DNA of 64,000 nucleotides from Botryllus schlosseri (GCA_051294905.1 CM119381.1:21576001-21640000), one strand, 5' to 3'; positions 7,001-63,326 are shown, numbered from the stretch's first letter. Made by a program: numbers and translations. Notes: generated by a model not told the origin, from the letters alone.

Positions 7001-10000
7001 GTTTCATCACGCCGAGCAATATGCTTTCGATATCATTTTTTACTGACGAATCTTTTACGTTGCGTGGCTATTCGTTCAACTGGACTGCGATCGGTGGGTA
7101 GTTGCTGTATATCGGAATTTGTGTTACGTTGTGAGGAACTTTGCAACACTTAATTAATAGCATGTAATAGACGATTAATAAGCCTTCAACTACGATTACT
7201 TTGTATCAGGGGATAGCGAAGTGCAGTTAATTAATTGACAATGTTATGCTGTCTCTCAGAATAAACAGTGGAAATTTGCCATACGGTTTTTGCCAGTTAT
7301 GCTGAAAATATTTTCTCTCCTTGTTACGTTTTGACTGGCTTCAAGGCCTTAAGCGCACAACCAGACTTGTACAAACTACTGGATTTTCAAAATGCACAAC
7401 TATAACTAGAACTAGAACTGCTCACGATCGAAGACATGACACGTTCTTGTCTATAGCTGATGTTGGTTATGTTTCATGTTTAATTACCGCCCGCGAAATG
7501 AATACTGCTGCTCGCTCCCAATTGATGCGCGAGATGGATGGAGAGATAGGCTCTATCAGTAGTAAAATGGTGTTTAGATGCATCACTGTTACCGGAACCA
7601 GTAACTACATATATCCACGGAGATTTCGGTCAAATTACCTCTCCCAACTACCCTAACGAATACGGCGATTTTCTGGAATATACTTGGATCATTAACGGAT
7701 CGTCCGGAAAGGTATATATGGTTTCGTAAATTCGCAATCAAAAGAAGGCTACATGATGATCACATTACGTGCATGAAATGAGACTTTCGGATCAAATGAT
7801 ATGACGATTATCACATGTATTTTATTCCACAATACAGAGTATGTTGGTGGAATTCGAACCGATTCTGGACATGCAAGAAAATCCTGGATGTATCAATGAC
7901 TACCTCGTTATCTCCGAAGGCTTGTCACCACCGAGCTCTATGGTAACGCCGCATGCCGGATTGAATGTGGACGAGTTTGACTAATTCTAATTGGTATTTC
8001 TTATTAGGATTATCAAGTCGTCATTTGCGGGTATACTTCACCGAAGGTATTTTTCTTTGACGACATCTACATCGTGTTCAAAACTGACTCCTCTATCGGC
8101 GGTGTTGGATTTTCATTGAACTTCTCTGCTGTTGGTAAGAATAGTTTTTCATTTTAGACACTTAAAGGCACTCCCTCACGCGTCTCCCCTAACCGCATGT
8201 CACTCCGCCCAGCGTAGTTATTTCAATCGAGCAGCTCATCTTGAAGTTATTCTGGAATAATGGTTGGGTATATCGCAGGAGAAAATGGATTATTGCAAAC
8301 AATTATTTTCCAAAACTCTAACAAAACCTCTCTAAACAGCAATATGTTTGGATCAGTAGACTATTGGCAATTAAAATGAGTTTGCGCGTGGAATATTTCA
8401 TCTCAGACGACCATTCCGTTTATGTGAGTTCGGAATTTCTAGCAGTTATGAAGCGAAACTGCCTAGTGGTTTCTCTTATTGAAAAATTCAAATTTCGTTA
8501 ACACTAACAACCACTTTGCAAATCTGGGTGTTTCGAGGACCCCCTGAACATGCTTCGCAGACTCCCGATTGAGAACCACTGCTATATACCGTGTTCAAAC
8601 TCTTCCCTTGCTATAGCTTCGGGAATGAGCAACGGACATGCTTCCAACTTCAATATATTCCAGAACCGTCGAATTCCCGAAGCACACTTACTTTTTAAAA
8701 CGCTGTGATCGTATTTTATTGCTGTAGACGAACCTACATGCAATGGCGTAACCCAACAAAACGGGTCATCTGGACATATTTCCACGCCGCTATACCCGAA
8801 TAAATACGCCCAATACATGGACTGTGAATGGCAAGTGGAAACCGCGGAAAATACGGTAAATTAGAATGCAGTACCGCAGATGTAAACAGTAAATTTCACA
8901 AAACCAAAAGTTATATATACATATTCGTACTGTAAACACTGTTTTGTTCAGGTCATCGCAGTGCGCTTCAACACAGACTTCTCAATTTTGTCCTTCGGCT
9001 GCTCCTTTGACTATCTTCAAGTATTTGACGGCACGAATTCGTCCTCCATACAAGTGAGTATGTAGAGGCGTTTAATCGGCAAATTACCGGACACGCACCG
9101 GGGATGACGCCAAAATAAGTGCGCCTGCGCCCTATGCCGCACAATTGTAAACACGTCACAAGGAGCGAATCGGCAACTCACTGGTAAAATTACCTACTTC
9201 TGATTTTGTTGGAGATATCTTACCGTCAGACGCGTGTATCCGAGATGTATCGCAATCAAAATTCTGAATTTTACCATCGGATCAAAGCCCATGCATCCAT
9301 ACTATAAGAGTCCGGGTTTCGCCGAAACTCACACGAATATTGAAGCCATGCGCCATGAACTCCAATCCGGTTCCGTGAAATTTGTAAATTCGAATCCGAT
9401 CGACCAGAATTCGTCACATCAAACCCCATGCTATTCCCACTCTATCACAGGGGAGTGACAGTTGGCAGTGTATTGTACAAAGTGTATGCACACATATAAC
9501 CTAAGAACGGCCTGAATACGCTCGGTTGAGCACAACCCGGACCGAACCCGACATATGACATTGCAGCCGAAAGTCAAGTGAAAATTTAATATCGATGATG
9601 AGTGGTTTGAGAATGCGGGAAGCTTAAAGCCTGAAATATTTTCCAATGTTGATGCAACTCGGCAGGATTCCCGCCTCCAGTCAGGCGGATCGCGGAACTT
9701 GGTAATAGCCCGCATTCACAATTCGCATTCACAGACACTTGTGTGAAGTCACGCATGACGCAGTCCTGCATCCAGATTTTACGGCCTTGCAACTCAGCTC
9801 GCCCTGACGAATACAAGCCAACAGCCTGGTTGCCAGTAAGTAACACATGGTAAAGTACGTAATTTTTCCAGTTCCAACATAACTTTTGTGGCGAACGAGC
9901 GCCGCGATCATTCGTCACAACTGGAAATCACCTTTATGTTCGCTTCGTGACTGCTGACATCAACAACGACAATTTCGGGTTCTCGATAAAGTGGGAGGCT

Positions 10001-13000
10001 GAAGGTACGCGGTGATACGGCAAAAATACAAAGACACTCGCAACCGATACATTTTCGTTCTAGTGAAGTGTGACGCCAACCAGTTCACGTGCTGGGACGG
10101 TACATGCATCTCAGATTCTTTGAAATGTGACGGTCAAGAAGACTGCCCAAAGGATATTGCAGACGAAGCCTCTTGTGAGTACATCTGCAGTTTGATCTCC
10201 GTATAAACAGATCACTGAAGCCTATATAGTTTGAATGCTGATATTATAGGACTAACATTAGACAAATGTGGAATCAGAGAATGGTCCGTAAAGAAGTACT
10301 TCTACTGTTTCGCTTACTTGCTCCACTTCCTCAAGTGGTTATGATGTTGGAGTACTTCTGCTTCAGAAATTTACGACATTACTTCTTCTACTTGAGTACA
10401 AACGGTGACTACTTTGCCCAGCTCGACTAAAACTCTATATCAGTGGTTCTCAACCTTTTATGTCTTCGTGGACCCCTTTTGCGCCGACAAGGACCCTGCG
10501 GACCCCACAAGTTTTCGTTCAAATTTAGCTCCATTAAAGCTAGTGACAACAACAAATTATCATCACACTATTTATGTGGAAATTGGGTAGACGGTAGCGA
10601 ATTCTCAAGCTGCATTTCTTGAAATATGTGGCAGCGTCTTGAAAATCCGCGCCTTCGATTTGATATGAACGAGCGTCGGACATTTTTTTCTACAGATATA
10701 GGTGATGGCGAATGGCATAATAACGAGCGCCGACGACCTCTTTGAGTATGATCGCAGCATATATACCACCAAAATTGAAACTCCGATTTTTTCTGAACAT
10801 ATCACGTCCATCCTAGTCATTTTCATCTAGCAGCACATTTTGAAGTTGTCCTGGGATAGTGCTGGTTATGTATATCACAGGAAAATGGATTTTCGCAAAA
10901 TATTTAAAGTCACGCTGATTGACCTTACTATTCCAACTTTTAAAAAAAATTCCTCAAATCCCAACAAAACATCTCCAATCGGCAATATGTTTGTATCAGT
11001 AGGCTATGGGCAATTTGGCAATTGAAATGAGTTTTAACAGTAAGATATTTCATCTCAGACGGCCATTATGTTGATGTGAGTCATGAAGTTGCAGCTGTAA
11101 TGAAGCAAAATTGCTTGGTAATAATCAATCATTTGAAAGTTGAGAGGTTTCGCGGACCCCCGTGAAAATGCTTCGGGGACCCCCGGTTGAGAACCACTGC
11201 TCTATCTCGAGGTTGATGATTCTTTTCAATGGAAATATGTAAACTCTAAGCCAGTTGTTCCCAACGTGAGCTATATCGCCCCCAACTGGGCGATTTTGAA
11301 CAAAGAAGGGGGCGAAAATACCAAAAAGGGTCCACTAGGATATATTTAATTTACACGGCCAACCAAAACGCACGTGCAGACAGCTTTGTCTGCATATGAC
11401 GCGAATGTTGACTAAAAAAAGGTCAACTCAACGGAAACTACTCGAACAATAACCCTTTTTCAGATAATTCAACAGCGATCAGAGTTATGTGAATATATTT
11501 CCCGTTTGTATGTCCTCTTTTCCAGACGCATAGATATGGGGGGCGAATATTTGTGTCGAGCTTGATATGGGGGCGATGATTCGAAAAAGGTTGCGAACCA
11601 CTGCTCTAAGCAAAAAGAGCGTGTATCCACACCGAAATGTTAGTACGCTAACACGAATACAGAACCTAACTCAAAATCATATCGCAGTCATAAATCCTAC
11701 GTAAACCACGCGCATACCTTACCTTATTTGGATTGAAATATTGTACTCGATTCATAACGCAGTGTAAGTTTGAATTAGGTTATGGTTCCATGTGTTATGG
11801 GAGTATATTCACATCCGTATATGGTGGTACACGGCTGGAGATTCAAACACTTTTCGCTGAGATCGTATAGTTTCTTACTCTTCACGTAGAAAGAGCTATT
11901 TTCGTCCCCATTCACATTAGACCAAATTCAAAACCCAATTCGGCGTTGTTAGTGAGTCCAAGGGGTGTATTCCGCAATGTGAAATGTTACAATATAATAA
12001 TTGGAGAGCTTCGTGGAGTTAGAGAATTTCGATAACTGGTATAAATCATTATGTACTGCCGAAATGTACTATTTATGAATACGTCGTGAACTCTCGGAGT
12101 AAAGACTTTGTTCTGTGACCAAAATTCACCCAGATATGTGGTTAAAGATGTATAAAATGCCTATCTCGGTTGATTTACCACACTAACAATGGCGAGATAT
12201 ACGAAGAGATCGATCGTAGTTCATGTTCTCTTTCCCCACTCATTCGAAGCTTGATTGAAATATTCGAACGCGTCCACGCCCCGCGCACTCGCGAGTGGGC
12301 TGCAATAATTTTGCAATATGGTTCAACTCTGGTACAAGTTCATGAGTAAATGAGCGATGTGTTCGACGTCGGATATTTAAACATGCAGATTGTAGCGTTG
12401 GCACTGCGATATAATTGTTCAAATCTCCAATCATAGGTATAATAAGTTTAGAGAAAAGATGTGCAGACCGACAAAGTTTTTTTCAAGCAAATGCCGTTAC
12501 AATAATCGCGTTTAGGTCCTATCGCGGATTCAGAGCAATGCGGCATTTCGGAAATCTCACCGGAGTACAAATGGGTAAGATATTGTGATTTTCTGCCATC
12601 ACATTCTATTATCTCCAACTGCTTTTAATAGGACAAATCCATGCAGACATGCCACAATACAAAACTATTGTACGCCTACAAAGACTTATTCAAAACAAAA
12701 ATAAAGTAGGCTAGTATCCAATTTATGTGCCTATTTCGAAACGATCCATCATGTTCAGATTGTTCACTCTCCAATCTCCGAAATAGTATAGTTGAATAGT
12801 AATGTATAGTGAACACCAGTCAGGAATCTTCGCGCTACACCGTGCGCATAAACAGCCCTTTGAACTCCGGTGCCATCACGGAAGTTGTAGACTCGAAGAC
12901 CCGTGGTAGCCAACGTATTGTGTATTGTATAGTTTAGTCTCTAGCAACATTTAACTAAGTCGGATCACGACACGATTCACTTACCTTACACACCAAATAA

Positions 13001-16000
13001 TTTTTGCTGTTACTCTGGTAATATGGCTGAGAAGATGTTAGCGATTTACCCTGAGAACGAAGGAATGGGCGCTCATTGATATCACTTCTGTTTCGAAATA
13101 GCATTACCGAGCTCAATTAATTCTGGACAGCAGTAAAGCACTGCCGTGGTTGTGTAGTTTTGTGCCTAACAAAATCGAAACATCGACGTAAAATAGCACT
13201 ATACAGTGTGCGCATTATACATTAGGTATTCGTATCCATTTGTTACGACTGATGGTTATTGCCATAGAATTTACTATAGCCCGTGTACGTCTGGACCATA
13301 CTAGGTTTCCGTGATATTCGATGTTTAAACGAGTGAAACCGTTCATATGCAAACTATAAATGTTGCTTACGAAAATTTACTCAACAACATGTTGTTTGAA
13401 GCCAGCAGTACTTTTTGTTATAACATCCGGCTTCCCCACCCCGTAGCGATTTTAATGAGTGAGATATACATCCAAACGCAAGACGCCACCTGCCAAATTG
13501 CTTAGTTCGCCCAGGTACACCCGACATTAGGGGTGTTAAAAAACTCAGTCAGTCAGTCCAATTGAAATTTCGGTCATTTTTGAAATACTATAGTATTTAC
13601 CAATTTCGTCACACCGACATGACCAAAAATCGTGTTCCAGATATCCCTGAAGAGGCAGGGATGTCTTTTCCACTTGTTTTGATCTTGACAAGGGCCTATG
13701 GTGGAGTTTGGATGAACTCACCACCCGTAATCGAAAGAAACATATGACACGGATTATAGCTGGAAATTAGTTCACTTCATTGAAATAGACACGTTAAAAC
13801 GACGGTTAGATAATTTTCAAATAGAGTACTTTGCACCCTGAAATTAACGACTATGAAAAGAAATGAACTGACAATAAGCACGTAAAATACGGGCAAATAT
13901 ATTTCTGACAACGGTGTCTAGATCACAACTTGTCATAATGCGCTTCTTGATATAAGAACCATGCAATGCCCACACAGTCTTGCTTCACTTAGGATTTCGC
14001 GGTACGTTGAGCGTGACACCATGTCAACCTTTTTGTTTTATTTGAATGTTTATGATTCACAATGAGCAGACAATGGTACAGCGGTAGGACTATAAAGCAC
14101 GCTACAAGGTGTAAAATGTCAAATGATAAGTTCTTCAACGGTGAAAAATCTACGATCGAAACGAAATGCAGGTTGTAAATAAATTTTGACTTCTTTTCCA
14201 ATTTTGACATTTTTTGACCTAACGCTACAATTTTGACCTAATTTTGACTTTTTCTGACGTGTCAAACAAAATTGCCCTACTGATTACTAACATGGGTGTA
14301 TTAGGTGTAGTCAACAATAATCTTGTAAAATAGTATCCCGGTACAACTACAAGACATAAAATTTTAAACTACAGCGGGTCGGATGACATGAAAAGAATTT
14401 AGCAACAAACTTTTGAGTGAGGGGCACTCTAGATATGGGTGAAAAGTTATACGCCATAATTAGGCATATCGTGGTGTAAATCAGGCCAGCGGCACTTGGT
14501 GCCAAAATCTTCCTTCCCACCTATTCCAATCGAAGAAAACAAGTCAAATACACCAATGCATCATATATTCAGAGCTCGATAAGAGGCCGCGTTCGACTCG
14601 TTTTCATTGATTGGAATTGGTTTGAAAGCAGATATCTGTAACAGAAAGGCAGTTTACCTTTTAGTCAGCCCCAACCCAAAACGTCGGTCTTGGGCCCCCA
14701 TAGGGGGATAAACCGAAGTTCTGGGGGGTTCGCCCCCCCCCACCCCCTCAGCCTGTCCGATTTTAGCCGCTACTCATCATCTACATTGTTATACTGTTTA
14801 GTGAGTCACCTTATTTCGCCTAAACGCGCCAAGCGCGAAAAATTTCTGAAATTCATGTTTGAATCGGTCAATATCATCAAGAATCGCGTATATATTGCTA
14901 TCAATTTTTTATCCTCTATCTTCTCACGTAATCAGATTTACCGGTAGAGCTGAGGGAGGTGTGTTGGAAAAGGTAGCACCCCTAAAAAATAATTCAACAT
15001 CTTCGGGCGGACCGGTTGGTATATTGACTTCGTTACATGATGCTATTTCGTGAACCCCCATGTCTGATATGTCAAAAGGTATGGAAATCGTCCAAACATA
15101 CTAAACTAAAGGAAGCACACGATTTCAAATTGATATTTCTTTACTGGCAAATGATTTTTCTCTTCGGGATAGCATTTTTCCTGTGGGGTTCGGATCGCCA
15201 CGACAGGAACATTAGGCGCCGTCCATTTAGGCGCCTATGGACAATCGAACATATATGTATGTATCTCGGGGTTTTCGGTCAGCGTAAGGGCATTCCTTTT
15301 CGGCCAAGGTCTTCTAGATGCTGCTCGTTCTTACACACTTCTTGGAGTCGCATGTTACACGGCCTATAACTTCATATGTCTTGGTGCGTCGTGGCACAGT
15401 AATGGCCGACGCAGAAGTCTCCATTTCTACAAATCATGCGTATTTTTTGTTGGGGGAAGGGTATCCAGTATTCAAGGAATTTGGCAGCATTAAATAGCGC
15501 GCAGCGCAAAAAAATTTTCAAAAAGTTACATAAATTTTCAAAAAAAATTCTATAATTTATGTTAATGCACTGAATAATTTTGGGCCCCCTTCGAGCTCGG
15601 GGAGCGGCAGTTACGGTCCTGCATATACGTCATGGTGTAAATACACGATTTTTGTTCAAATGGTCTAAAATGGCGGTAGGAACCGACACACCCCCAAATT
15701 CAGAAATTAAGCATAGAAACAAACAAAACTGGATATTCAGCGTGATGCATAATTACATGATGGAATTATACTGTTGCTCACTTCGATGGCCAAAGCAATG
15801 TCTTTGAAATTTTGCGTCTGGTTGTACGTAGTTCTGTTAGTGGTAATTGATAATATAGTATTAGAATAGCTTCTTGGATGTTCAGAACTTCATGATAGTA
15901 TTGAAAAGTATAGGCCTATCCATATGTTAATTTCAATATGAATGTATACTATGCAATAATATAGTAATAAATAGGAATAAGTACAACGCCTTTGTTTCGA

Positions 16001-19000
16001 TGTCATTTTATACATCTAAAATTAGAGATAAATCGTTACACCTTAATAATAATATTATTATCTAGCAATCATTACGTTTTGAAAGTTCCAGTCTTCAAGT
16101 CGCTTCTGAAAGCTGGCGCTGATTACATACACATCAATCGCAGGTCACGTCGCGGAAAATACTAAATCGATATCGAAATACTTACATGTGTTCGCCATCT
16201 CTTTTATGCCCAGAGAGGATTTCGGGTTCAGCAGTCAGCACTCCCACGTTCATATTTGTCAAACTATCTTCCTCTCTCACGGAAAACCCGCCAACTATAG
16301 TTAATGGAGATAATTTACTTTGATTTATCGACTCTCATTCATTTAGCATTCGCGTATTGTTGGCGGGTATGACGCCGTGAAAGGATCCTGGCCGTGGCAG
16401 GGACTTTTTGGCATAGTATTTCGGGGAGAGGAGACCAATATTTGTGGAGCGGTATTGATTTCTGATCGATTGGTATTAACAGCGGCACATTGTATATTGA
16501 CTGGGTGAGTGTGATCTATGTTTTCAAAAATAACCTGTTTGTTACTGCAAATGATATGGATAGCAGTACCACAACTATCAATACTGTCTCGCAATTAAAT
16601 AATATTAGGAATCATCCGAAATCTTTCGAGACAGACATCCCTATTGCCGCAATAGATCTTACGCAGTGGTTCTCAACTGGGGTCCCATGGAACATCAGGG
16701 GTTTTCTCTGCCAGTCCCAGGGCTGCCCTGAAGGTTAAGACACACACTCAACTCATAAATATGATTTGTGATAATACGCCCGTCTTGGCCCTCATTGGTT
16801 GCAGGCATTTAGGTCAGATCGGTTGTGGAATTGTGACTGATATGGTGATACATCGTGACCAGTGACGTTAGCAGCGGAGTTGGAGTTCGAAACCGAATCA
16901 CCGTTTAGTTCTTCTGAAACGCCAATCCTATCTCCCACATTTATTAGCTCATTTGTAATTAGGCAGTTGGTATAATGCTGATGCGTTTCGACTGAATAAT
17001 ACGACCGGGCCTTCCAAAGTGAGCCTTCGCATTTCTGAACTGGTATCTGAAAATGAGCAGAAATCTCATTTGATTTACACTAAATATTCATTATAATGTT
17101 TTCGTTTTGTGTGGAATTATATTTTATGGATTTGTTCTTTCAAGACTCTGATAATGCACAACAATTCTCTTCAACCATTTTCGAGTGGTGCACCCTTCAA
17201 AGTTGTAGCTTCGACTCACTCTGTTCATATTGCTTAATATATGTCTACCGACTAAAAAAGGTCGTCACTTTCGTCTGGCTGCCAAATATCGGTCCATCAC
17301 GGAGGCTGATCACTGAAATTAGGTCGACAAAATCACTAGCTTCGACATCAGGATATAAACCACTGATTCCAAGTACAATGTTTCTCATGTGCACCCCATC
17401 CGGATTTTCATGCACGCGGGGGTGCACCGTGCGCGCTGGTTAAAGAGCACTGACCTATGGTAATGTATTAGATGTGTAATGCCGTGTTGGGATCAAGTCG
17501 AGCCAATCGATTTTCAAAGGCCACTCGAGTCAAGTCAAGTCACTCGTTTTTTGGGGTGTCTCGAGTCAAGTCGAGTCATGTCAAGTCAAGTCACGAGTCA
17601 TGTCACGATTCAAGTCATATTGAATTTTTGAAGTACGGGTGATGATGCAAAGTTATTACATTTTGCTGACTGGTGGAAGGACAGATTAGTTGGCCATTTA
17701 TCTTGAATGAAATAACGAATATAAAGTCAAATATGCATACAAAAAGGTGTTGTATCGCTCACACACACGTAGAACTACGCGAGTAACTGTATAGCTATAT
17801 GCTACAATCTGTTATTATCATCCAATCGGGATCGATGAGAAGCCTCGAGAAGTTGAACAAATTGATGTGGTACAATGCATTATCCATCTTCACATGCGTG
17901 AGAATATAAACGCATACACGATATTCGTTCGATTTAAATCATACAAGAAGGTTGGTTAAGGTAAGCACTGCGCAATGTAAGCACTGAGCTGTCTGAGAAA
18001 CAAGGAAACGTTACTATTAGATTAATACACTGCACACACACACACTACTGCGACAACGTAAGCTGTGATCCTTTCGTTTGCGGTCAATTTATTGTGATGT
18101 AACAATGGAGGATCATTGAAACATATAATCAGTGAATGACTGGTTACTCTCACAAGTGACCCCGGCGTATTGGGAACAATCCGAACATACAAAAGATAGG
18201 GTGATTTGATTGACACCGTTTACTTAATGACTTGAAATTGACTCGCGAATTTTGCTCCGAGTCATGAGTCAATCCACATATTTTAGGCGCCGAGTCAAGT
18301 CAAGTCAATTTTGCAAAGTGACTCGAGTCAAGTCAAGTCATACGAAAGCGTTGACTCGAATCATCCCAACACTGGTGTATTGAGGTATATTCTGTGTATC
18401 TCAGCGAAAATATTGGGTACCGCGAAGGCCTGCAGATTAGCGTAATTGTTCCACCGGTTGATAAAGGCTATGAACGACTGGTCTCTATACATTCAATAAA
18501 AACATTTACTTGTGTTTACTTTGGGATCACACGGCAGGAATCGCATGAATAGTCCGTATAGCAGGATTGTTTATGTAGCTCACGTGTTGACGCTGTTATT
18601 ATTACGGATATGCGCTCAGATCACAGTTTTGAATATACACTATACAGCGCTTGCGCTGTTCCACTCTAGTGATGTTGGTAGTAATGTTGTTGGTAATGCT
18701 AGTTGATAACGTAAATATCGCGGATGTACATAAGGGTTTATGACATAAAAACAATGTATAAACTGAATTCAAAAAATATCTTCTGCATATTCGATAAATA
18801 TGAGTTCATAACTTACTCGGGTATACAATCGAGCTTATAGACTTAGTGACTTCCAAGTCGCAATGTCAAGCGTTTTCCTCGAAAAACATTAAAAAATAAT
18901 CACCATTCAATATTCAATTAAAATGATACGGTGCGGTGTGGATGTTTCGATGATGCCCTCCTCAATCTGAGTGCCTTCAAAATGTCCCTGCTTTTCAATT

Positions 19001-55100: not shown

Positions 55101-58100
55101 TTCAGAAGTCCAGTGTGAAGTCTATTAGCGCTGTTCTGCATCCATATTTTTCGGCCTAGCAACTCTGCTCTGCTCGCTCTGAAGAATTCATGCACACAGA
55201 TCAGTTGTCAATATGTCACACATGGTGAATATACGTCGTGTCTTTCAGTTTCAACATAACTTTTGTGGCGACCATGCGCCACGGTCATTTGTCACAACTG
55301 AAAATCACCTCTATGTGCGCTTCGTGAGTGCTGACTTTGGCGACGGGAATCTCGGGTTCTCGATAAAATGGGATGCTGAAGGTATAAGGCGATAGGCAAA
55401 TATTCAAAGACACTCGCATCTGGCACGTTTTTCTTTCTAGTGAAATGCGATTCCAACCAGTTCACGTGCTGGGACGGTACCTGCATCGCGGATTCTCTGA
55501 AATGTGACGGCCAAGTAGACTGCCCGGCGGATATTGCGGACGAAGCCTCTTGTAAGTACATTGGCATCTTCGTCTCAGCACAGAAAATCGAATGAAGGCT
55601 ATAGTGTAAATCTCGAATTATGTAAAACAACCATCATATTTACCATAACTACGACTACCTTGAGCTTACAGGGGTAGAAATCCCGTATAATGCATACCCC
55701 AGTTAATTGACAGCTGGACCAACTGCCCTGTATTCGGCGATCTGTAATCGAGCACGAGGTATAGTTACTTCGATTGGTGTAGGGCTTCCGACTGTTACTA
55801 TACTGGCCATTATCTTGGTTGATGCATCAACATTTAATATTTGATTGAACATGAGCAGATATTGCGTAACTTGCATGAGAGCCAGATATGGAACAATTAT
55901 TGCAACCAGCGCGCGAGGTATAAAATCAATGTGCATTGTGTGGGTGTCTACTCATTGGAATATTGCAATCTAGCTTCGCATGAGTGGAGACGGAGAAATT
56001 GTTGAAATATTGTCATGAAACATGAACTGTGAAAGATATCTACGTACATTTTAGGCTATATCACAGGCCACGCATGCAGAATCTAACATCGTCACTATGT
56101 TATAATTCAGAAGTCTCCAATCATATGTTACTATTTTAATAGAAAGCATGCGCAGATAGACAAAATTTGTAAACCTAATATCGTTACAATCATTGATTTA
56201 GGCCTTATTGCGGATTCGGAGCAATGCGGCATTTCAGAGATCATGCCGGAATACAAATGGGTAAGATATTTCGATTTTCCGCCATCGCATTAATTTAGAC
56301 ATCTACTTTTTAATTATACATCTAGTCCAACTGTCCAGTGTCGGAAATTCCATGAAGTTGAAGAGTATGTTGTAGGATATATGCAAACACAACACCTCTT
56401 TCTCGCCAACTGATCCGCGTAAGCCAGTGTTTCTTAATCGGGGTCCGCGAAGCCTCGAAATAGTTGATAACCTAATTTGTATTTTTTTTTAATTCGGGAA
56501 ATCACGAGGCAGTTTTGCTTCATTACTAGTAAAGCTCTAGAGCACACATCAACAAAATGGCCATTTGAGATGAAATATCTTATGCGCAGACTCATTTTAA
56601 TTTCTAAATTGTCAATAGCCTACTGATACAAACATTTTGCTGTTTATAGATGTTTTGTTGGGGATTGTGGAAAAAAGTTGGATGAGAAAGGTCAATTACG
56701 GTGAATTCGAAATGTTTACAAAAATCAATTTTTCCTGTGATTTACATAACCATTTTTCTATAATAACTTCAAGATGAGCTGATAAATATAAATAACCAGG
56801 CTTGACGTTATATGCTCATTAGAAAAAATAGTTTGTCAATTTTGGTGCCATATTTGTTGCGACGATCATACCCAAATTGGTCGTCGAAAGCGTGACGCGT
56901 TGTTATCACATTCGCCGCCACATTTATCAGCGGAAATCGATTTTCGGCATTCGTTCATATCATATCGGAGGCGTGGATTTTCAAGACACGACCACATATT
57001 TCAAGAAATGCAGTTGCAGAATTCGCTTTGAAATAATAAAAGGCAACCCAATTTCTTCATGAATAGTATGATCTTTATTTTCAAGAAAAGTCATTTTATT
57101 CTGTTTATCACAAGCTTACAGTTATCATTTGCACAAAACAGATGACGATGGCACGATAATCGACCTAAATTTGAACTAAAACGTCGTGGGGGTCAGCGGG
57201 GGTCCAAAAGGGGTCCGCGAAGACAAAAAGGTTGAGAACCACTGGTATAAAACGTATAGTGGGCTGTCACTAAGGCTGATCAACACGGAAAGTATACGCG
57301 AAGATGCAATGAGTGCGCCATAAACCCAAAAAAAACTTTTTGACGAGAGTGGGGGGTTAGGGGGCGTTTGATGCCTGTTTGTGGCCCTGGGGGCGTTGCG
57401 TAAAAAAGTTTGAGAAACCCTGCTTTTAACTGAGCTGAAAACTTTGCGGTCGCGATGTATGGGTTGTGTAGGCCTATGCAGCACAGATCATGTCCATTAG
57501 GAGCATACACCTTTGCGATTACGCTGACAAGTTGTCAGGATTGATCCGGCGTTTCTGAATGTTTCGTAGTCGAATGCGAAATTGATCAATGTCGTTCAAT
57601 TAGCGTTTTGTTTTGATCAGGATGCAGGTGGGAGATTGACGATAGCGCGCCGTTCAGATGTATTTCGCATTCTAGGGTAATAGGCTTGATAATGCTACGA
57701 ACGGTACAGTACATGCGGATCATCCGTGCTTTGTAAAAGCAAACTGCGGCAGATATGGCTGATGAACAGCAATCCAGTGATTCAGTGCAGTTGCTGAATT
57801 CAACGTTCATTTTGCGAGGAAAGCGTTACAACATAGTGAGGAAACGATGGGGCGTCCTTTTTTTAGTAAGCAGCCTGTTATTCCTGGATATGTTCAGTTA
57901 TACCTTTTTCTCGTTCATCAACGATTTAACCTCGTTCTACTTCCGTGTCGACCCAGCCATGGTGGACTTGCAAGCGACGATGAATCTGGTTGGTAGGGCA
58001 TTCAGCGTAATGGTGGTCAGCATATTCGGCGAGCTGATGACATTTCGAAATCTGGCAGTTTTGGGAGCCGCTGTGAATACCCTTGCCCCTTTTCTGATCT

Positions 58101-61100
58101 CAATTGGTGTTGCACTGAAAATGTTTGGATTTGTGATTGGTGGTATGTTCCTCACCGGAAATTCGACTTCAATATTCATGTCACTGATACAATTATGTGC
58201 CGGCAATTGGTTTCCTCAGAACGAAAGAGGTAGAGCTAACGCGTTTCCATGGGTATCAAGGAGACTGTCTCATTTAACTACTAACATAATTGCAACAAGA
58301 GCAATGGGAGTGTCCTACAATGAAGAGCAACTTCATCAAATTATGGAATCTCGCAACGAAACGAATGTCATCGACAAACAATTTCAAGTCGCGTATGCGT
58401 CCGTGTTCGGTTCGATTAGCTCCTTTTCACTTTTGTGCACTGTGCTTTCGCTGATTTATTTATCCGATAAACCCCCACTAGCTGATGTAATCGTACCATC
58501 TGACGATAAGAAATCATCATTTAATGAGGATGACCCCATTCTAGGAGAGCCGCGGTCGTCGTTCAACTTGAAAAGAGAACTAGGCGAAATCAAAAATCTA
58601 CTTGGGCATTCACCATTCCTTATGATCACTTGCGTGTATACTTTCGCGATGGTTGAGAGGCCTTTAGGGACCGTTCTAATATCATCCTTCATGTTGAAGG
58701 AATTCCCAAAGTTGAACGATCAGTTCGTCGGCATAATGGTCAGTATTGGAATCGTGCTAGCTACAATATGCTCTGGGATAGCGGGAATAATCCTGGATAA
58801 ATTCACGAGGCCAAGATTGACATTTCTTTGCTTTGCCGCAGTAGGTGCTATCTCCCTTGTCTTATTTTCGCTCTGTTTCTATGTTCATTACGTTGTCGGT
58901 GTTTGCGCTGCTTTTCTATCACTGTGGTCTACCAGAGATGGTGTTCTTGTCTGCTGCACGCACCGTTTAACTGGTATCACTGCGAGCTTGTCTAGCTCTA
59001 CCCGTGTCAAGGCCTATGCTATACCCCTAGCAGCGATAGCAATGGCAACAACATTTAGTATATTTTTGATGAGGATTTTGATGCAAAGGTTCAGCTCTGC
59101 AGTAGCAGCGTCGTTTCCGCTGCCCTTTCTGATTATTGCTATGTTATATTTTACATTTTTCGTTGGCCGTATCTTCGTGACGCTAGATGAATTGAACATT
59201 ACACATTGCAAACGAAACAGTATTCCAGTGGGGATAAAAACGTATCAGACTTGCATTTATGCAATTGTTGTCGTTAGAGTTCATGTAGTATGTTGACCTG
59301 TCGCCTAATTATTCATATTACTTCCTAAGATATAGTATTGAACGTAATGTAAATATAGGTATTACCACAAACTCTCCCAGTTCCACCCGCGTGAGGGCCT
59401 GCCGCTTTACCTCTAGCACAGTGGTTCTCAACCGGGGGTCCTCGAACCACTAGGGGTCCGCGCAGCATTTTACGGGGTCCACAAAACCCCCAACTATGCA
59501 AAATGGCTGATAACTTATAGTTTGTATTTCTGAGAAATCACGAAGCACTTTCCTGTCATAACTGCTAAAACTCGCATAAACGGAATGGCCGTCTCAGATG
59601 AAATATTCTACCGCGCAAACTCGTTATAATTGCCAAATCCTCAATAACCTACAGTTAGAGATGTTTTGTTCAAGTTTCAGAAAATGATTGTTTGCAAAAG
59701 CCATTTTCTCCTGTAATATGCATAACCGCTATTCCAGAATAAATTCAAGATGAGCTTCTAACTTTGAACTAAAACAAGGGGCGGGGTCCGTGACGGCCTA
59801 AAAGGAGTCCACGAACACGAAAAGGTTGAGAACCACAGGAGTTAGCGGTGTCTTACAAAAGCCCTGAACTGGGTCGTGCTACAACCTACAGGTCGGCAGT
59901 TACGGAATCACCATGAAGAATATCGGCCTGGTGTAAATGACCATTGCAGCCGTAAAACACCAACAACAACAACCTTGTAGCCTATATGTATAGTCAGTCA
60001 GCATCTGCCAATCATCTACCCGTCACGCTGTGCACATAAACACCTATTTGAACTCAGCGCGGAAGTCTCTTTCATAGCCTCGTGAAAGCCACTGCATTGT
60101 ATTATCGGGTTATATTTAACTTATAGTCGAATCGCGATTCGCTTACCCTACATCCGAAAGAATTTCCTGTTAGTTGGGTGGATTGACAGAGATTATTCAC
60201 GGTGACATTGCCGATTTACTCTGCGAATGAATGCCCGTGAAGAGGCGGGCATCGATATCAATTCTGTATTGAAATAAAATTACCGATCACGATCGCCTGG
60301 TCACCTGTCAAGTGGTTATGGAGTTTTATGCCAACAAAATCGGAACATCGATGTAAAATAAGATCAACTGTATGCATTCGACAGTGGGAATTCGTCGAGA
60401 TTTGGCAACGATTGGTTATTGATAAATGAGGTATAGCGAAGGATTAGGCAGTGCACATTGGTACCATTATAAGTGATTTGTGTATTACTGCAGGTATCAA
60501 CCAGTGATACTACTGACAAAATATAAAAATGGTAAGGGTTGCTTTTGCAGATTTCCCCTCAACGTGGCGGTCGAGTCCAATCAACGGTACTTCTGGTACA
60601 AAATCTGGCTTTCCCAGCCACACGGAGGTAGAAAAACTGTAAATCATTTAAATACACCTTTACGCATGGCGCCACATGTCAAGGTGCTTAGTTCCCCCGT
60701 GTAAATGTACACCCGACATCTTCTCTGATCGCTAACAAGGGTTATAGGTGTGGTCAAGTTGAAGCAATAGTGATTGTGTAGGATTCAGTGTCGGGATAAC
60801 TCGAGTCATGACTTGACTCGAGTCACTTTGCTAAAATGACGTGACTTGACTTGACTTGACTCGGCGTATCAGAAATGTGGTCTGACTCGTGACTCGGAGC
60901 AAAATTCACGAGTCAATTTCAAGTCATCAATTAATCGGTGTCGATGTAAATCACCGTATCTTGCAGATGTTCGGATTGTTCGCGAAACGCTGGTGTAACC
61001 CGTGAGAGCGACCAATCATTCAATAATCGTGCGTTTTACTGAGCCTCAATTGTTCTCTCACAAATAATTTGACCACAAAGGAAGTGATCGAAGTTTACAG

Positions 61101-63326
61101 CTTACGTTGTCGTAAACTAGTAGTAAAGTAATATAATAGAAAATTATCTACCTTAACCAAACCTCTTGTTTTATTGATTTTGAATTCGAATATAGTTTAT
61201 ATACTCCTCAACCATTGGCGCAGGCTCGAACTGTATCACATCAATATGAAAATGGGTAAAGGGTATAATGTATTGCATCTTATTAATTCGTTTCTCCGTT
61301 CTCTATTTTGGTTGGTAACAAAAACTGACGCTACCTATATGCGAGCGATACAGCGCCTTCTTGGGTGTATATTCATGTCTATATTCGTTCATCGGTTCAA
61401 AATCAATGACCACTCAATCTGTATTTCAGACAGCTATAGCAAAATGTAATGATGTAATCATGCCTCATACTACGGAAAGGCAACCTGACTTTAATTTTGA
61501 CTTGACTTGACTTGACTTGACTTGACTTGACTTGACTTGACTTGACTTGACTTGACTTGACTTGACTTGACTTGACTTGACTTGACTTGACTTGACTTGA
61601 CTTGACTTGACTTGACTTGACTTGACTTGACTTGACTCGACTTGACTCGAGTCACTTCCAAAAATCGAGTGACTTGACTTGACTCGAGTCACCTCCAAAA
61701 ATCGAGTGACTTGACTTGACTCGAGTCAAAATGTGCAATGAATCGAAATGATTCGTGACTCCAAGGTCGTGAGTTGATCCCAACACTGGTAGGATTTTAA
61801 CCAAGTACAACTGGAAGATACGCAGAACGGTCCAAAACTACTTCAAGATAAAACGAGGTCGTATTCCGTGGCGAGAATCTAGCAACTTACGGTTGGGCAT
61901 TGGTGGAAGATAGGTGTACTCACCATCAGGGCCGTAACTGTAGCACCCCAAACCTCCTAATTATGGGGCCAAGCTCGAAGGGGTCACAAAATTACTTCGT
62001 AAATCAACATAAATTATAGTGAAGTTTTTTAGTGACACGCACCTTTAAAGTTTCTTCGGGAATGGCGCGATTCATATTCACTATACATCTTGATTTTGAT
62101 TTAATTTATTGGCATGTTGGTCAAAACCTTCGATATATGTGCCCAAGTATCCACTATCAATAGGCCTGATTAACCTGCGACGAATAGTGCTCTCATAACC
62201 ATCTGAGCCCCACAATACAAAGGCCACCTTGGGAACCCAAAGAGAAAGATGATGCGTCCCGTGAATAAATTACAATTTGTGTGTGCTTCTCAGGAAAGAA
62301 ATATGTCTATTCATTTAGTTTAGTCTGGTACGATTTTTGACGATCCCAATATCCTGTGACCATATGGCGGAGTGGGGCAGGAAATAACAACATGCAAGAA
62401 AGTATTAGTAACAAATGGCCCGACCGGAAATGTTATAATTATTAGATACGTGCCCCAAATTTTCTAACACACCACCTCCTTCCTCTACAGGTATATCTGA
62501 TCACGTGGGCAGAGAGGGTTCAAAATAATTAGTAATAATATACGAGATCTTTTCGCGGTTTGCGCGACTACACAAAAAATACACACCGACACAACCGGGC
62601 CAACAGCGGTAAAACAGCCGGTTTTAAAATGGGGTGAGGGTGAGGTAGCCTACAGCTTAATTTGCCATACTCATTGTTTTTGCCTAACAATACGCAGTGA
62701 AACAATGCGCTATCGTCTTCACAAACCGTCCATATAGCGTGCTTCGTAAAGTTGCGACGTCCAAGAGTGCAGAGCATATACCTTACGTTACTGGTGAATC
62801 TGTTGTTGTCAATCCATACCTAACCTTCAACTGTAGATATTTAGTAGCTTATTTGTAGCCTGCGTGTGAAGAGTGATAATGTGATATGATAAGAAAAAAG
62901 TCACCAATTGATCCAGCTACCCTTTTGGGTTTTTAAATCTGAATCTTTATGGGTCAGTGCCTCACTAACCATAAATCTCTCTGCGCGCTACTGTGGGTCA
63001 CTGGCACATTTACAGTATGATTGAAGGTTTGGAATCCGGCTCAGCAGTGGACACTACCTCGCTCACTTTTTGCCAAAACCTCTCCATCTCCCTCGGAAAA
63101 TCGGATAACACCGGCTAAATCGTTAAAAGGATGATGTGCCCCCCTTTATTTTACTTTCATTCATTTAGCATTCGCGTATCATTGGGGGGTATGACGCTGT
63201 GAAGGGATCCTGGCCGTGGCAGGGACTATTTGGCGTAATATATCGTGGAGAAGAGACCGATATTTGTGGAGCTGTATTGATTTATGACCGATGGGTGTTA
63301 ACGGCGGCACATTGTATATTGACGGG
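49199..63326 (+). CDS. Gene B: tandem paralog of gene A, 5' part (signal peptide, CUB1-3, LDLa1, start of protease 1); continues past the window end
   Basis: Exons have the same lengths and phases as A exons 1-13: 49199-49274, 50139-50260, 50747-50839, 50913-51033, 51811-51944, 52017-52121, 52179-52305, 54189-54316, 54412-54513, 55249-55381, 55441-55551, 56202-56260, 63169-63326. No stops or frameshifts. HSR-IIGG...LTAAHC. Confidence 0.92.
51399..51435. repeat. (TGTGA)n microsatellite
   Basis: Directly visible. Confidence 0.85.
52412..52863. mobile_element. hAT-like MITE (TAGGGTTGCATTTAAAAC termini)
   Basis: 18-bp TIR and TTTAAAAC subterminal repeats; fragment at about 32095; no clear TSD. 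Confidence 0.7.
56425..57244. mobile_element. Charlie-type MITE upstream of the nested MFS gene
   Basis: Inverted full-length relative of 10441-11199. Confidence 0.8.
57755..59296 (+). CDS. Intronless MFS transporter, FLVCR/SLC49-like (513 aa), nested in intron 12 of gene B
   Basis: Only long ORF in the window. It has about 12 hydrophobic segments in two halves with a hydrophilic central loop ([12 protein letters not shown]). N-terminal RKRWGVLFL and [13 protein letters not shown] resemble the SLC49 RRWxxL and WFxxxExxxA motifs; second-half ILDKF matches the MFS motif-A-like position. Family assignment is by recognition only. Confidence 0.82.
   Translation: MADEQQSSDSVQLLNSTFILRGKRYNIVRKRWGVLFLVSSLLFLDMFSYTFFSFINDLTSFYFRVDPAMVDLQATMNLVGRAFSVMVVSIFGELMTFRNLAVLGAAVNTLAPFLISIGVALKMFGFVIGGMFLTGNSTSIFMSLIQLCAGNWFPQNERGRANAFPWVSRRLSHLTTNIIATRAMGVSYNEEQLHQIMESRNETNVIDKQFQVAYASVFGSISSFSLLCTVLSLIYLSDKPPLADVIVPSDDKKSSFNEDDPILGEPRSSFNLKRELGEIKNLLGHSPFLMITCVYTFAMVERPLGTVLISSFMLKEFPKLNDQFVGIMVSIGIVLATICSGIAGIILDKFTRPRLTFLCFAAVGAISLVLFSLCFYVHYVVGVCAAFLSLWSTRDGVLVCCTHRLTGITASLSSSTRVKAYAIPLAAIAMATTFSIFLMRILMQRFSSAVAASFPLPFLIIAMLYFTFFVGRIFVTLDELNITHCKRNSIPVGIKTYQTCIYAIVVVRVHVVC
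59419..59838. mobile_element. Charlie-type MITE downstream of the nested MFS gene
   Basis: TIR CAGTGGTTCTCAACC/GGTTGAGAACCACAG; deleted relative of 10441-11199. Confidence 0.8.
60786..61788. mobile_element. hAT MITE with an expanded (TTGAC)n microsatellite
   Basis: Perfect TSD GTAGGATT; inverted relative of 17482-18374. Confidence 0.9.
61497..61636. repeat. (TTGAC)n microsatellite, about 28 perfect units
   Basis: Directly visible. Confidence 0.97.

Follow-up and report, generated by a model that had tools for sequence, protein, structure and literature searches.

The movement of whole genes by DNA transposons has been amply described in plants; pairs of such transposons are known to carry whole genes to new places in maize, where pairs of Ac/Ds elements form hAT macrotransposons and a pair of Tam3L elements moved Ccd1 together with its neighbors to give rise to the White Cap locus (bioRxiv 10.1101/082677, PMC9910405). 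DNA transposons also capture host genes in plants (Pack-MULEs and Pack-TYPE elements), in bats (Helitrons; PMC4224331), and in Caenorhabditis elegans (Turmoil-1; PMC2572040), and movement of whole genes by DNA transposons was stated in 2008 to be then unknown in animals (PMC2572040). A limited literature search turned up no animal macrotransposon. Here, we describe a stretch of 64,000 nt from the tunicate Botryllus schlosseri (GCA_051294905.1 CM119381.1:21576001-21640000; "the window," from whose first letter all positions are counted), in which an open reading frame (ORF) for an SLC49/FLVCR-like transporter of the major facilitator superfamily (MFS) lies in intron 12 of a protease gene, between two MITEs (miniature inverted-repeat transposable elements). 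The protease gene is one of two tandem paralogs, A and B, and only B holds the ORF. We propose that a gene from an intronless family probably reached this intron as DNA, in a single macrotransposon formed by the MITE pair, after the A/B duplication.

As in the maize hAT macrotransposons, each of two closely linked hAT elements contributes one outer end, neither is flanked by its own duplication, a single 8-bp duplication is common to the outer junctions, and a whole gene travels between the elements. The locus differs from them in that old MITEs, 420 and 820 nt long, form the ends, the genome is that of a tunicate, only one gene unit of 2.2 kb was carried and its destination was an intron, and the empty site is reconstructed from other copies of a short interspersed nuclear element (SINE) rather than read from a reference allele; the donor locus was not found in the regions sampled. 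The mechanism is known from maize, and it is the taxon and the setting that are unusual. With Pack-MULEs, Helitrons, and Turmoil-1 the locus shares the movement of host coding sequence to a new place by a DNA transposon, but those systems usually carry gene fragments within a single element, whereas here two separate elements enclose a whole gene together with its flanks. Like the nested intronic genes of other animals, it is a complete and separate coding unit within one intron of a larger gene; unlike them, it is on the sense strand, is present in only one of two tandem paralogs, and has a traceable route of arrival. The locus therefore matters as a case in which all of the macrotransposon diagnostics occur together in a tunicate, with an empty site recoverable from a repeat family. 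It would provide a concrete mechanism for the dispersal of a lineage-specific transporter family and for sense-strand nesting in one paralog only, and it draws attention to a large and unstudied tunicate-only branch of SLC49 with a pocket unlike the choline site of FLVCR.

A gene-bearing block between two MITEs

The block and the repeat that received it comprise the following features.

56334-56424, plus strand: 5' part of a split SINE-like repeat, colinear with intact copies up to ..CCGCGTAAGC
56417-56424, no strand: left copy of the target-site duplication, GCGTAAGC, matching 59839-59846 at 6 of 8 positions
56425-57244, plus strand: MITE1, a full-length hAT-type nonautonomous element of 820 nt; outer 5' end of the putative macrotransposon
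57251-57426, no strand: fragment of a third, unrelated interspersed repeat, inside the block
57504-57754, plus strand: upstream region common to the paralogs on contig C12; candidate promoter or 5' untranslated region (UTR)
57755-59296, plus strand: MFS (SLC49/FLVCR-like) ORF, 513 codons with an ATG start; codons 465-513 frameshifted
59145-59190, plus strand: site of a 2-nt insertion, which lies near 59147
59297-59357, plus strand: rest of the former 3' UTR
59358-59418, plus strand: fragment of another MFS coding sequence, 60 nt (codons about 410-430), adjoining MITE2
59419-59838, plus strand: MITE2, 420 nt, an internally deleted member of the hAT family to which MITE1 belongs; forms the putative macrotransposon's outer 3' end; AATAAA at 59738-59743
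59839-59846, no strand: right copy of the target-site duplication, GAGTTAGC
59847-59974, plus strand: 3' part of the split SINE-like repeat, with a (CAA)4 tail at 59961-59972

A preliminary description of this DNA had noted that the ORF is flanked on both sides by MITEs of one family, and this was borne out: MITE1 and MITE2 lie in the same orientation and belong to a single family with ~2,900 candidate copies in the genome. The termini of the family are CAGTGGTTCTCAACC and its complement (terminal inverted repeats), and nine other copies keep 5 to 8 of the 8 bases of an 8-bp, TAG-centered target duplication (nnnTAGnn). Since such a duplication is a signature of hAT elements, we assign the family to the hAT type on these sequence features. 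MITE1 aligns over its positions 16-820 with copies of 780 to 824 nt elsewhere. The similarity between MITE1 and MITE2 is no higher than that between unrelated copies of the family, and they are thus independent elements. Neither has a duplication of its own, the immediate flanks matching at 4 of 8 positions for MITE1 and at 1 of 8 for MITE2 (solitary copies match at 5 to 8). The outer flanks of the pair, in contrast, match at 6 of 8, a score reached or exceeded in 4% of noncognate flank pairs. Additional copies of the MITE family lie in other introns of paralog A (8232-8486 and 10436-11114), in the opposite orientation, and have no counterpart at the matching places in B.

Between the MITEs, the ORF is accompanied by the sequences that flank its relatives. 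The upstream region was recognized by blastn and by alignment to the C12 paralogs (loci L002 to L005), and the former 3' UTR was recognized by local alignment to the 3' UTR of L002, with a score that was reached by 1 of 500 shuffles. No run of A residues follows the end of this 3' UTR homology (~59357). The 60-nt piece of a second MFS coding sequence is 80 to 83% identical to the coding sequences of L002 and L003 and is closer to those than to the coding sequence of the window copy itself. This would fit an origin in a tandem array; a continuation of the fragment past MITE2 was not found. The third repeat fragment has seven other genomic matches, at 73 to 81% identity.

These features suggest the following route. 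Two nonautonomous hAT elements in the same orientation would have bracketed a 2.2-kb stretch made up of the gene with ~250 nt of upstream sequence, its 3' UTR, and a scrap of a neighboring family copy. Acting on the two outermost ends, a hAT transposase would then have moved the 3.4-kb block as a single macrotransposon, which would have integrated into a SINE-like repeat of the intron and duplicated 8 bp of its target, at some time after the A/B duplication. The array on contig C12 was presumably the donor. hAT transposase dimerization domains are abundant in the genome. Three matches to the dimerization domain lie inside the C12 transporter array itself (G000:C12:23445185-23445418, 23514160-23514402, and 23399538-23399774), and one of the three is the best match in the genome and lies in an open frame of 456 amino acids (aa).

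The target can be rebuilt from other copies of the repeat. The 122 nt that follow MITE2 come from the 3' part of the repeat, and the sequence immediately left of MITE1 comes from its 5' part. The SINE-like repeat gave 1,843 candidates at a first look; 40 scored copies were 80 to 87% identical, and the copies that were aligned have terminal tails of the (CAA)n or (ACAA)n-like kind. A B-box-like motif, GGTTCGAGTCC, is present in four of five copies, and ARAGORN called no tRNA in the copies. When 56425-59846 (MITE1, the gene, MITE2, and one 8-bp duplication) was removed, the junction aligned without gaps to 11 intact SINE copies; when both copies of the duplication were kept or 16 nt were removed, 8 to 16 additional gap columns appeared in the alignments that still crossed the junction. 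Because the target is rebuilt in exact register, the 3.4-kb unit most probably inserted into the SINE as one hAT element. The (CAA)4 tract at 59961-59972, which had been described as tail-like, is the tail of this abundant repeat. A long target duplication or a signature of retro-insertion around the whole 3.7 kb was considered as well and rejected, the direct repeats at 56336/59897 and 56369/59974 being not above chance.

The host intron and the time of insertion

The host genes are two tandem paralogs encoding CUB/LDLa/trypsin proteases on the plus strand, A at ~2.5-19 kb and B at ~47.8-64 kb of the window. The parts of B around the block are as follows.

56111-56260, plus strand: exon 12 of paralog B, activation-peptide region ending ..EYKW, phase 0; assigned from its splice sites, its uninterrupted frame, and its homology with A 12418-12574
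56261-63168, plus strand: host intron 12 of paralog B, 6,908 nt; pyrimidine tract and AG at 63167-63168 before HSRIIGG
63169-63326, plus strand: first trypsin-domain exon of paralog B, reading HSRIIGG...AAHC

The donor of exon 12 is gtaaga, with its GT at 56261, and the counterpart of the intron in A is 12575-16346 (3,772 nt). Two anchors align between the paralogs, one on the left (A 12382-12626 with B 56073-56310, 75% identity) and one on the right (A 12808-13527 with B 59996-60719, 62% identity, E = 5e-46), and between them there are 181 nt in A versus 3,685 nt in B. Sequence specific to B begins at ~56311, and homology to A returns at 59975. On the evidence of open frames, canonical splice sites, and homology to A, the MFS ORF is wholly intronic and on the same strand as protease B, so that the uninterrupted 513-codon frame on the sense strand of intron 12 in one paralog was confirmed in every coordinate. 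No MFS remnant was found in paralog A or elsewhere in the window, nor was there a MITE remnant at the corresponding site in A.

The SINE copy differs from its closest relatives by 13 to 18%, or 0.07 to 0.10 per copy, and the Jukes-Cantor distance between the A and B introns is 0.35, or 0.175 per lineage. Because the SINE is about half as diverged as the introns are per lineage, the SINE, and hence the block inside it, appears to have arrived after the A/B duplication, and by this measure the block is a gain in B and not a loss from A. The synonymous distance between the window copy and its surviving C12 relatives (0.34 to 0.51) is larger than the age of the insertion allows, which fits a cut-and-paste donor that is now gone.

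Alternative routes into the intron

Three observations weigh against movement as a single macrotransposon. The outer inverted repeats of the pair have 4 mismatches in 30 and the inner ones have none, the outer target duplication is imperfect, and neither a donor locus nor an empty donor site turned up in the sequences flanking L002 to L006 or in the sampled half of the C12 array (alternate 10-kb pieces). The first of these might be expected if the outer ends were older residents, as they would be had a break in a single MITE already lying in the SINE, caused for instance by attempted excision, been repaired by copying from a distant locus in which an MFS gene lay between two MITEs. Such ectopic gap repair would lead to the same final arrangement, in which the outer ends lie in the SINE with a single 8-bp duplication and the inner flanks are foreign. 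It would, however, require two homology-dependent steps on MITEs that are only about 70% identical, and no mosaic breakpoint is visible in either MITE, each of which aligns end to end with other copies; moreover, the difference between 4 of 30 and 0 of 30 is not significant. We consider gap repair rather unlikely and continue to favor the transposition of the MITE pair as one unit.

The preliminary description had proposed a retrocopy or a transposon-carried gene gained after the duplication, or else a loss from A. The transposon-carried gain is the part that stood, given the MITE pair, the register of the SINE, and the timing. A processed retrocopy of an SLC49 mRNA, with (CAA)4 as its decayed poly(A) tail, would account for the single exon and for the A-rich tract downstream at 59961-59972, but it is scarcely credible: all of the paralogs are intronless, leaving no intron loss to explain; the tract lies beyond MITE2, 600 nt past the end of the 3' UTR, and forms the tail of a SINE that has ~1,800 candidate copies; ~250 nt of conserved upstream sequence was copied too; and the direct repeats bracketing the insert are not significant (79 to 127 of 1,000 shuffles reached their score). 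Very improbable as well is the presence of the block in the ancestral intron followed by its deletion from A. The paralogs cannot be aligned base by base around the gap, and the 181 nt of A have no clear counterpart in B, both of which speak for a deletion, but the site in A is free of MFS and MITE sequence, and the SINE that received the block is about half as diverged per copy as the introns are per lineage.

A tunicate transporter family without introns

The ORF protein matches Pfam MFS_1 (PF07690) over residues 40-388 with E = 1.7e-15 and 57.2 bits (curated cutoff, 33.4); an NCBIfam search gave no match. A search of the species' own 495-Mb genome returned ~30 full-length copies, each a single open frame over ~450 residues, along with dozens of fragments. 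The copies form arrays on contigs C1, C5, C7, and C12 (the last at 23.40-23.62 Mb) and occur as singletons on many other contigs; dispersed copies lie on C2, C3, C6, C10, C11 (at 8.38 Mb), C13, and C14. Nine extracted paralogs are intact, with 464 to 480 aa, and end in a conserved ..FLW(P/S)YLRD. The nearest relatives of the ORF form the tandem array on C12, and the window copy is a mosaic with respect to them, its 5' half being closest to L003 and its middle being closest to L002. Since the whole family is intronless, the single exon of the window copy is uninformative with regard to retroposition, and the intron-containing parent that had been anticipated was not found among these single-frame copies. 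An absence of transcription together with a dN/dS ratio (nonsynonymous to synonymous substitutions) near 1, or an ancestrally intronless family with outgroups carrying it at this position, had been named as speaking against the initial reading; the family is indeed intronless throughout the genome, and the pairwise dN/dS ratios of the window copy against its paralogs are 0.15 to 0.34.

Outside the genome, the family is scarcely represented: of 1.8 billion representative proteins, only 49 matched at E ≤ 1e-3. Those with names are all from Styela clava or Ciona, are annotated as "FLVCR-like" or "SLC49A3-like," and are 18 to 29% identical. One Logan protein matched at 46% identity; no copy in this genome is more than 47% identical to it, and it therefore comes from another species. 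Taken from these sequence comparisons, the family appears to be a tunicate-restricted, ancestrally intronless SLC49/FLVCR-like branch of the MFS; a literature search for FLVCR expansions in ascidians turned up nothing relevant.

Both sequence profile and predicted structure place FLVCR nearest, in agreement with the identity first suggested. A profile of 15 family members, none of them from Styela, was searched against the PDB and matched FLVCR2 (2.8e-18) and FLVCR1 (1.2e-11) and no other chain at E ≤ 0.01. The AlphaFold2 model (mean predicted local distance difference test [pLDDT] score, 78.1; predicted template modeling score, 0.75) has two helix bundles with a disordered loop at residues 245-267 between them, in the helix pattern of the twelve-helix, two-domain MFS fold. 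In Foldseek, ranks 1 to 12 were all FLVCR1 or FLVCR2, four orders of magnitude ahead of the next match, and the best 50 of 500 PDB matches were all MFS transporters. The family shares the MFS fold with FLVCR1 and FLVCR2 (PDB 8qcx, 8ubz, and others) at an E value of about 1e-14 and a template modeling score of 0.76 to 0.85, depending on the target. It differs from them in that the identity is only about 14 to 16% and in that the tunicate family is intronless, has ~30 copies, and was seen only in tunicates.

The residues that coordinate choline and ethanolamine include W102, Q191, F324, and Y325 of FLVCR2 (PMC11168923). In a HMMER alignment, which is remote at this distance, W102 pairs with Y49 of the ORF (F or Y across the family), Q191 pairs with T138, and F324/Y325 pair with the R-P of a conserved ERPLG motif, so that the published choline cage is not kept at any of these positions. 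Because the aligned pocket residues differ, the substrate of the tunicate family is presumably neither choline nor ethanolamine.

Several other members of the family were unusual. L003 and L004 (G000:C12:23.45 and 23.40 Mb) differ very little (dS, 0.064; dN, 0.016), a sign that they were duplicated in tandem or underwent gene conversion recently. L006 (G000:C10:8917829-8921983) is split: ~1.27 kb (positions 238-1504 of the locus) separates residues 5-83 from residues 86-468, and the two parts are read in different frames. Either a transposon has inserted here or, in a family that otherwise lacks introns, an intron has newly arisen. Finally, G000:C1:10.06-10.55 Mb is a dense field of stop-ridden family fragments amid a few intact copies.

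State of the gene and its transcription

The evidence that the window copy has been maintained comes from comparison with its paralogs, using a three-way split of distances and a count of lineage-unique changes. The changes unique to the window copy number 16 synonymous and 12 nonsynonymous (pN/pS, 0.24, within the range of the paralogs), and this, together with the low pairwise dN/dS ratios, indicates purifying selection on its own lineage. Only one unique change, L453S, falls at a position that is invariant in the family. There is no stop in 468 codons, for which neutral drift of 0.08 to 0.10 gives a P value of 0.005 to 0.014; this favors constraint but is suggestive only, because the lower bound on the age of the insertion is loose.

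The end of the protein tells a different story, and the earlier label of "intact" has to be qualified: the frame is a single open one of 513 codons, but codons 465-513 lie outside the family frame. Alignment to six paralogs placed the two inserted nucleotides near 59147. At 59164-59190, WPYLRDAR-stop can still be read in the displaced ancestral frame, and because this stretch differs from L003 only synonymously in the old frame, the frameshift is young, or is an allele, or is a slip of the assembly. The frameshift replaces 13 conserved C-terminal residues and adds a new tail of 49 residues, leaving the twelfth transmembrane helix hydrophobic.

Four RNA runs of the species were aligned on 56000-61500, with 6 to 13% of each run read. 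In this sample, host exon 12 had no reads at all, and the reads that did align on 56000-61500 were all partial matches to repeat copies elsewhere.

Taken together, several findings count against a working gene. The 2-nt insertion has removed the family-wide ..FLW(P/S)YLRD end in this copy only, and the model has a pLDDT below 50 for residues 476-513 of the new tail. Three further changes are likewise confined to the window copy: GCG stands in place of the ancestral ATG, and the new ATG lies three codons downstream; the TATA-like motif in the upstream region is 4 nt shorter; and the ancestral AATAAA position now reads ATTGAA. The ORF had zero reads in three of the four RNA runs and a trace in the fourth (X14, well under 1x over two bins), and none of its sequence words were found in the indexed RNA-Seq runs. 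Furthermore, the divergence of the SINE sets an upper bound only on the age of the insertion, and because it bounds that age only from above, part of the purifying-selection signal may predate the move. The frameshift, the altered signals, and the near absence of reads speak for a dying or dead gene that recently lost its function and is not transcribed, and we regard that as a serious possibility, if one that falls somewhat short of an even chance. It is opposed by the pN/pS on the window copy's own lineage, the stop-free frame, the conservation of family-invariant residues other than L453, and the hydrophobic last helix. In addition, an allele or a slip of the assembly could account for the frameshift, and since these runs were just as silent for the host gene, they may not have included the relevant tissue. 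On balance, judging from the sequence, the chances that the window copy still functions seem to us about evenly divided.

If the gene is expressed, it would run from its own carried upstream region and not from the host transcript; an own promoter is the simpler expectation because the upstream region was carried along. Coupling to the host, whether by spliced-leader (SL) trans-splicing from the protease pre-mRNA or by an early end of B transcripts, had been raised on account of the same-strand position within the intron. Tunicates use SL trans-splicing; four of five close copies retain an AAG|C site that precedes the ancestral ATG by 12 nt and is a candidate trans-splice site; and MITE2 carries its AATAAA on the plus strand, where it might end a transcript. 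We nevertheless consider host-coupled expression distinctly unlikely. The CAG at 57750-57752, which had been proposed as the acceptor, does not hold up in that role, as it lies in codons 2 and 3 (GCA GAT) of the ancestral frame, with an ATG still present immediately upstream in four C12 paralogs. The gene also brought its own conserved 250 nt of upstream sequence, and its relatives lie in tandem arrays without such a host.

A broader claim would be that MITE-pair macrotransposition is a working route for whole-gene relocation in a chordate relative, that it delivered a still-functional and independently expressed transporter to this intron, and that it helped to scatter the family's ~30 copies over at least a dozen chromosomes. 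We offer this as speculation that is more doubtful than the route proposed for the single block.

The RNA reads revealed two features of the repeats in this region. At 59915-59944, many reads matched a 30-nt core of the SINE and continued into unrelated sequence on both sides, and copies of the SINE are therefore embedded in abundant transcripts elsewhere. At 60786-61150, which is also a repeat, the read depth was 30 to 40x, almost all of it from partial matches; in run X20, 26 reads carried the SMART template-switch oligonucleotide directly before 60853, which marks the 5' end of a transcript in some copy of this repeat.

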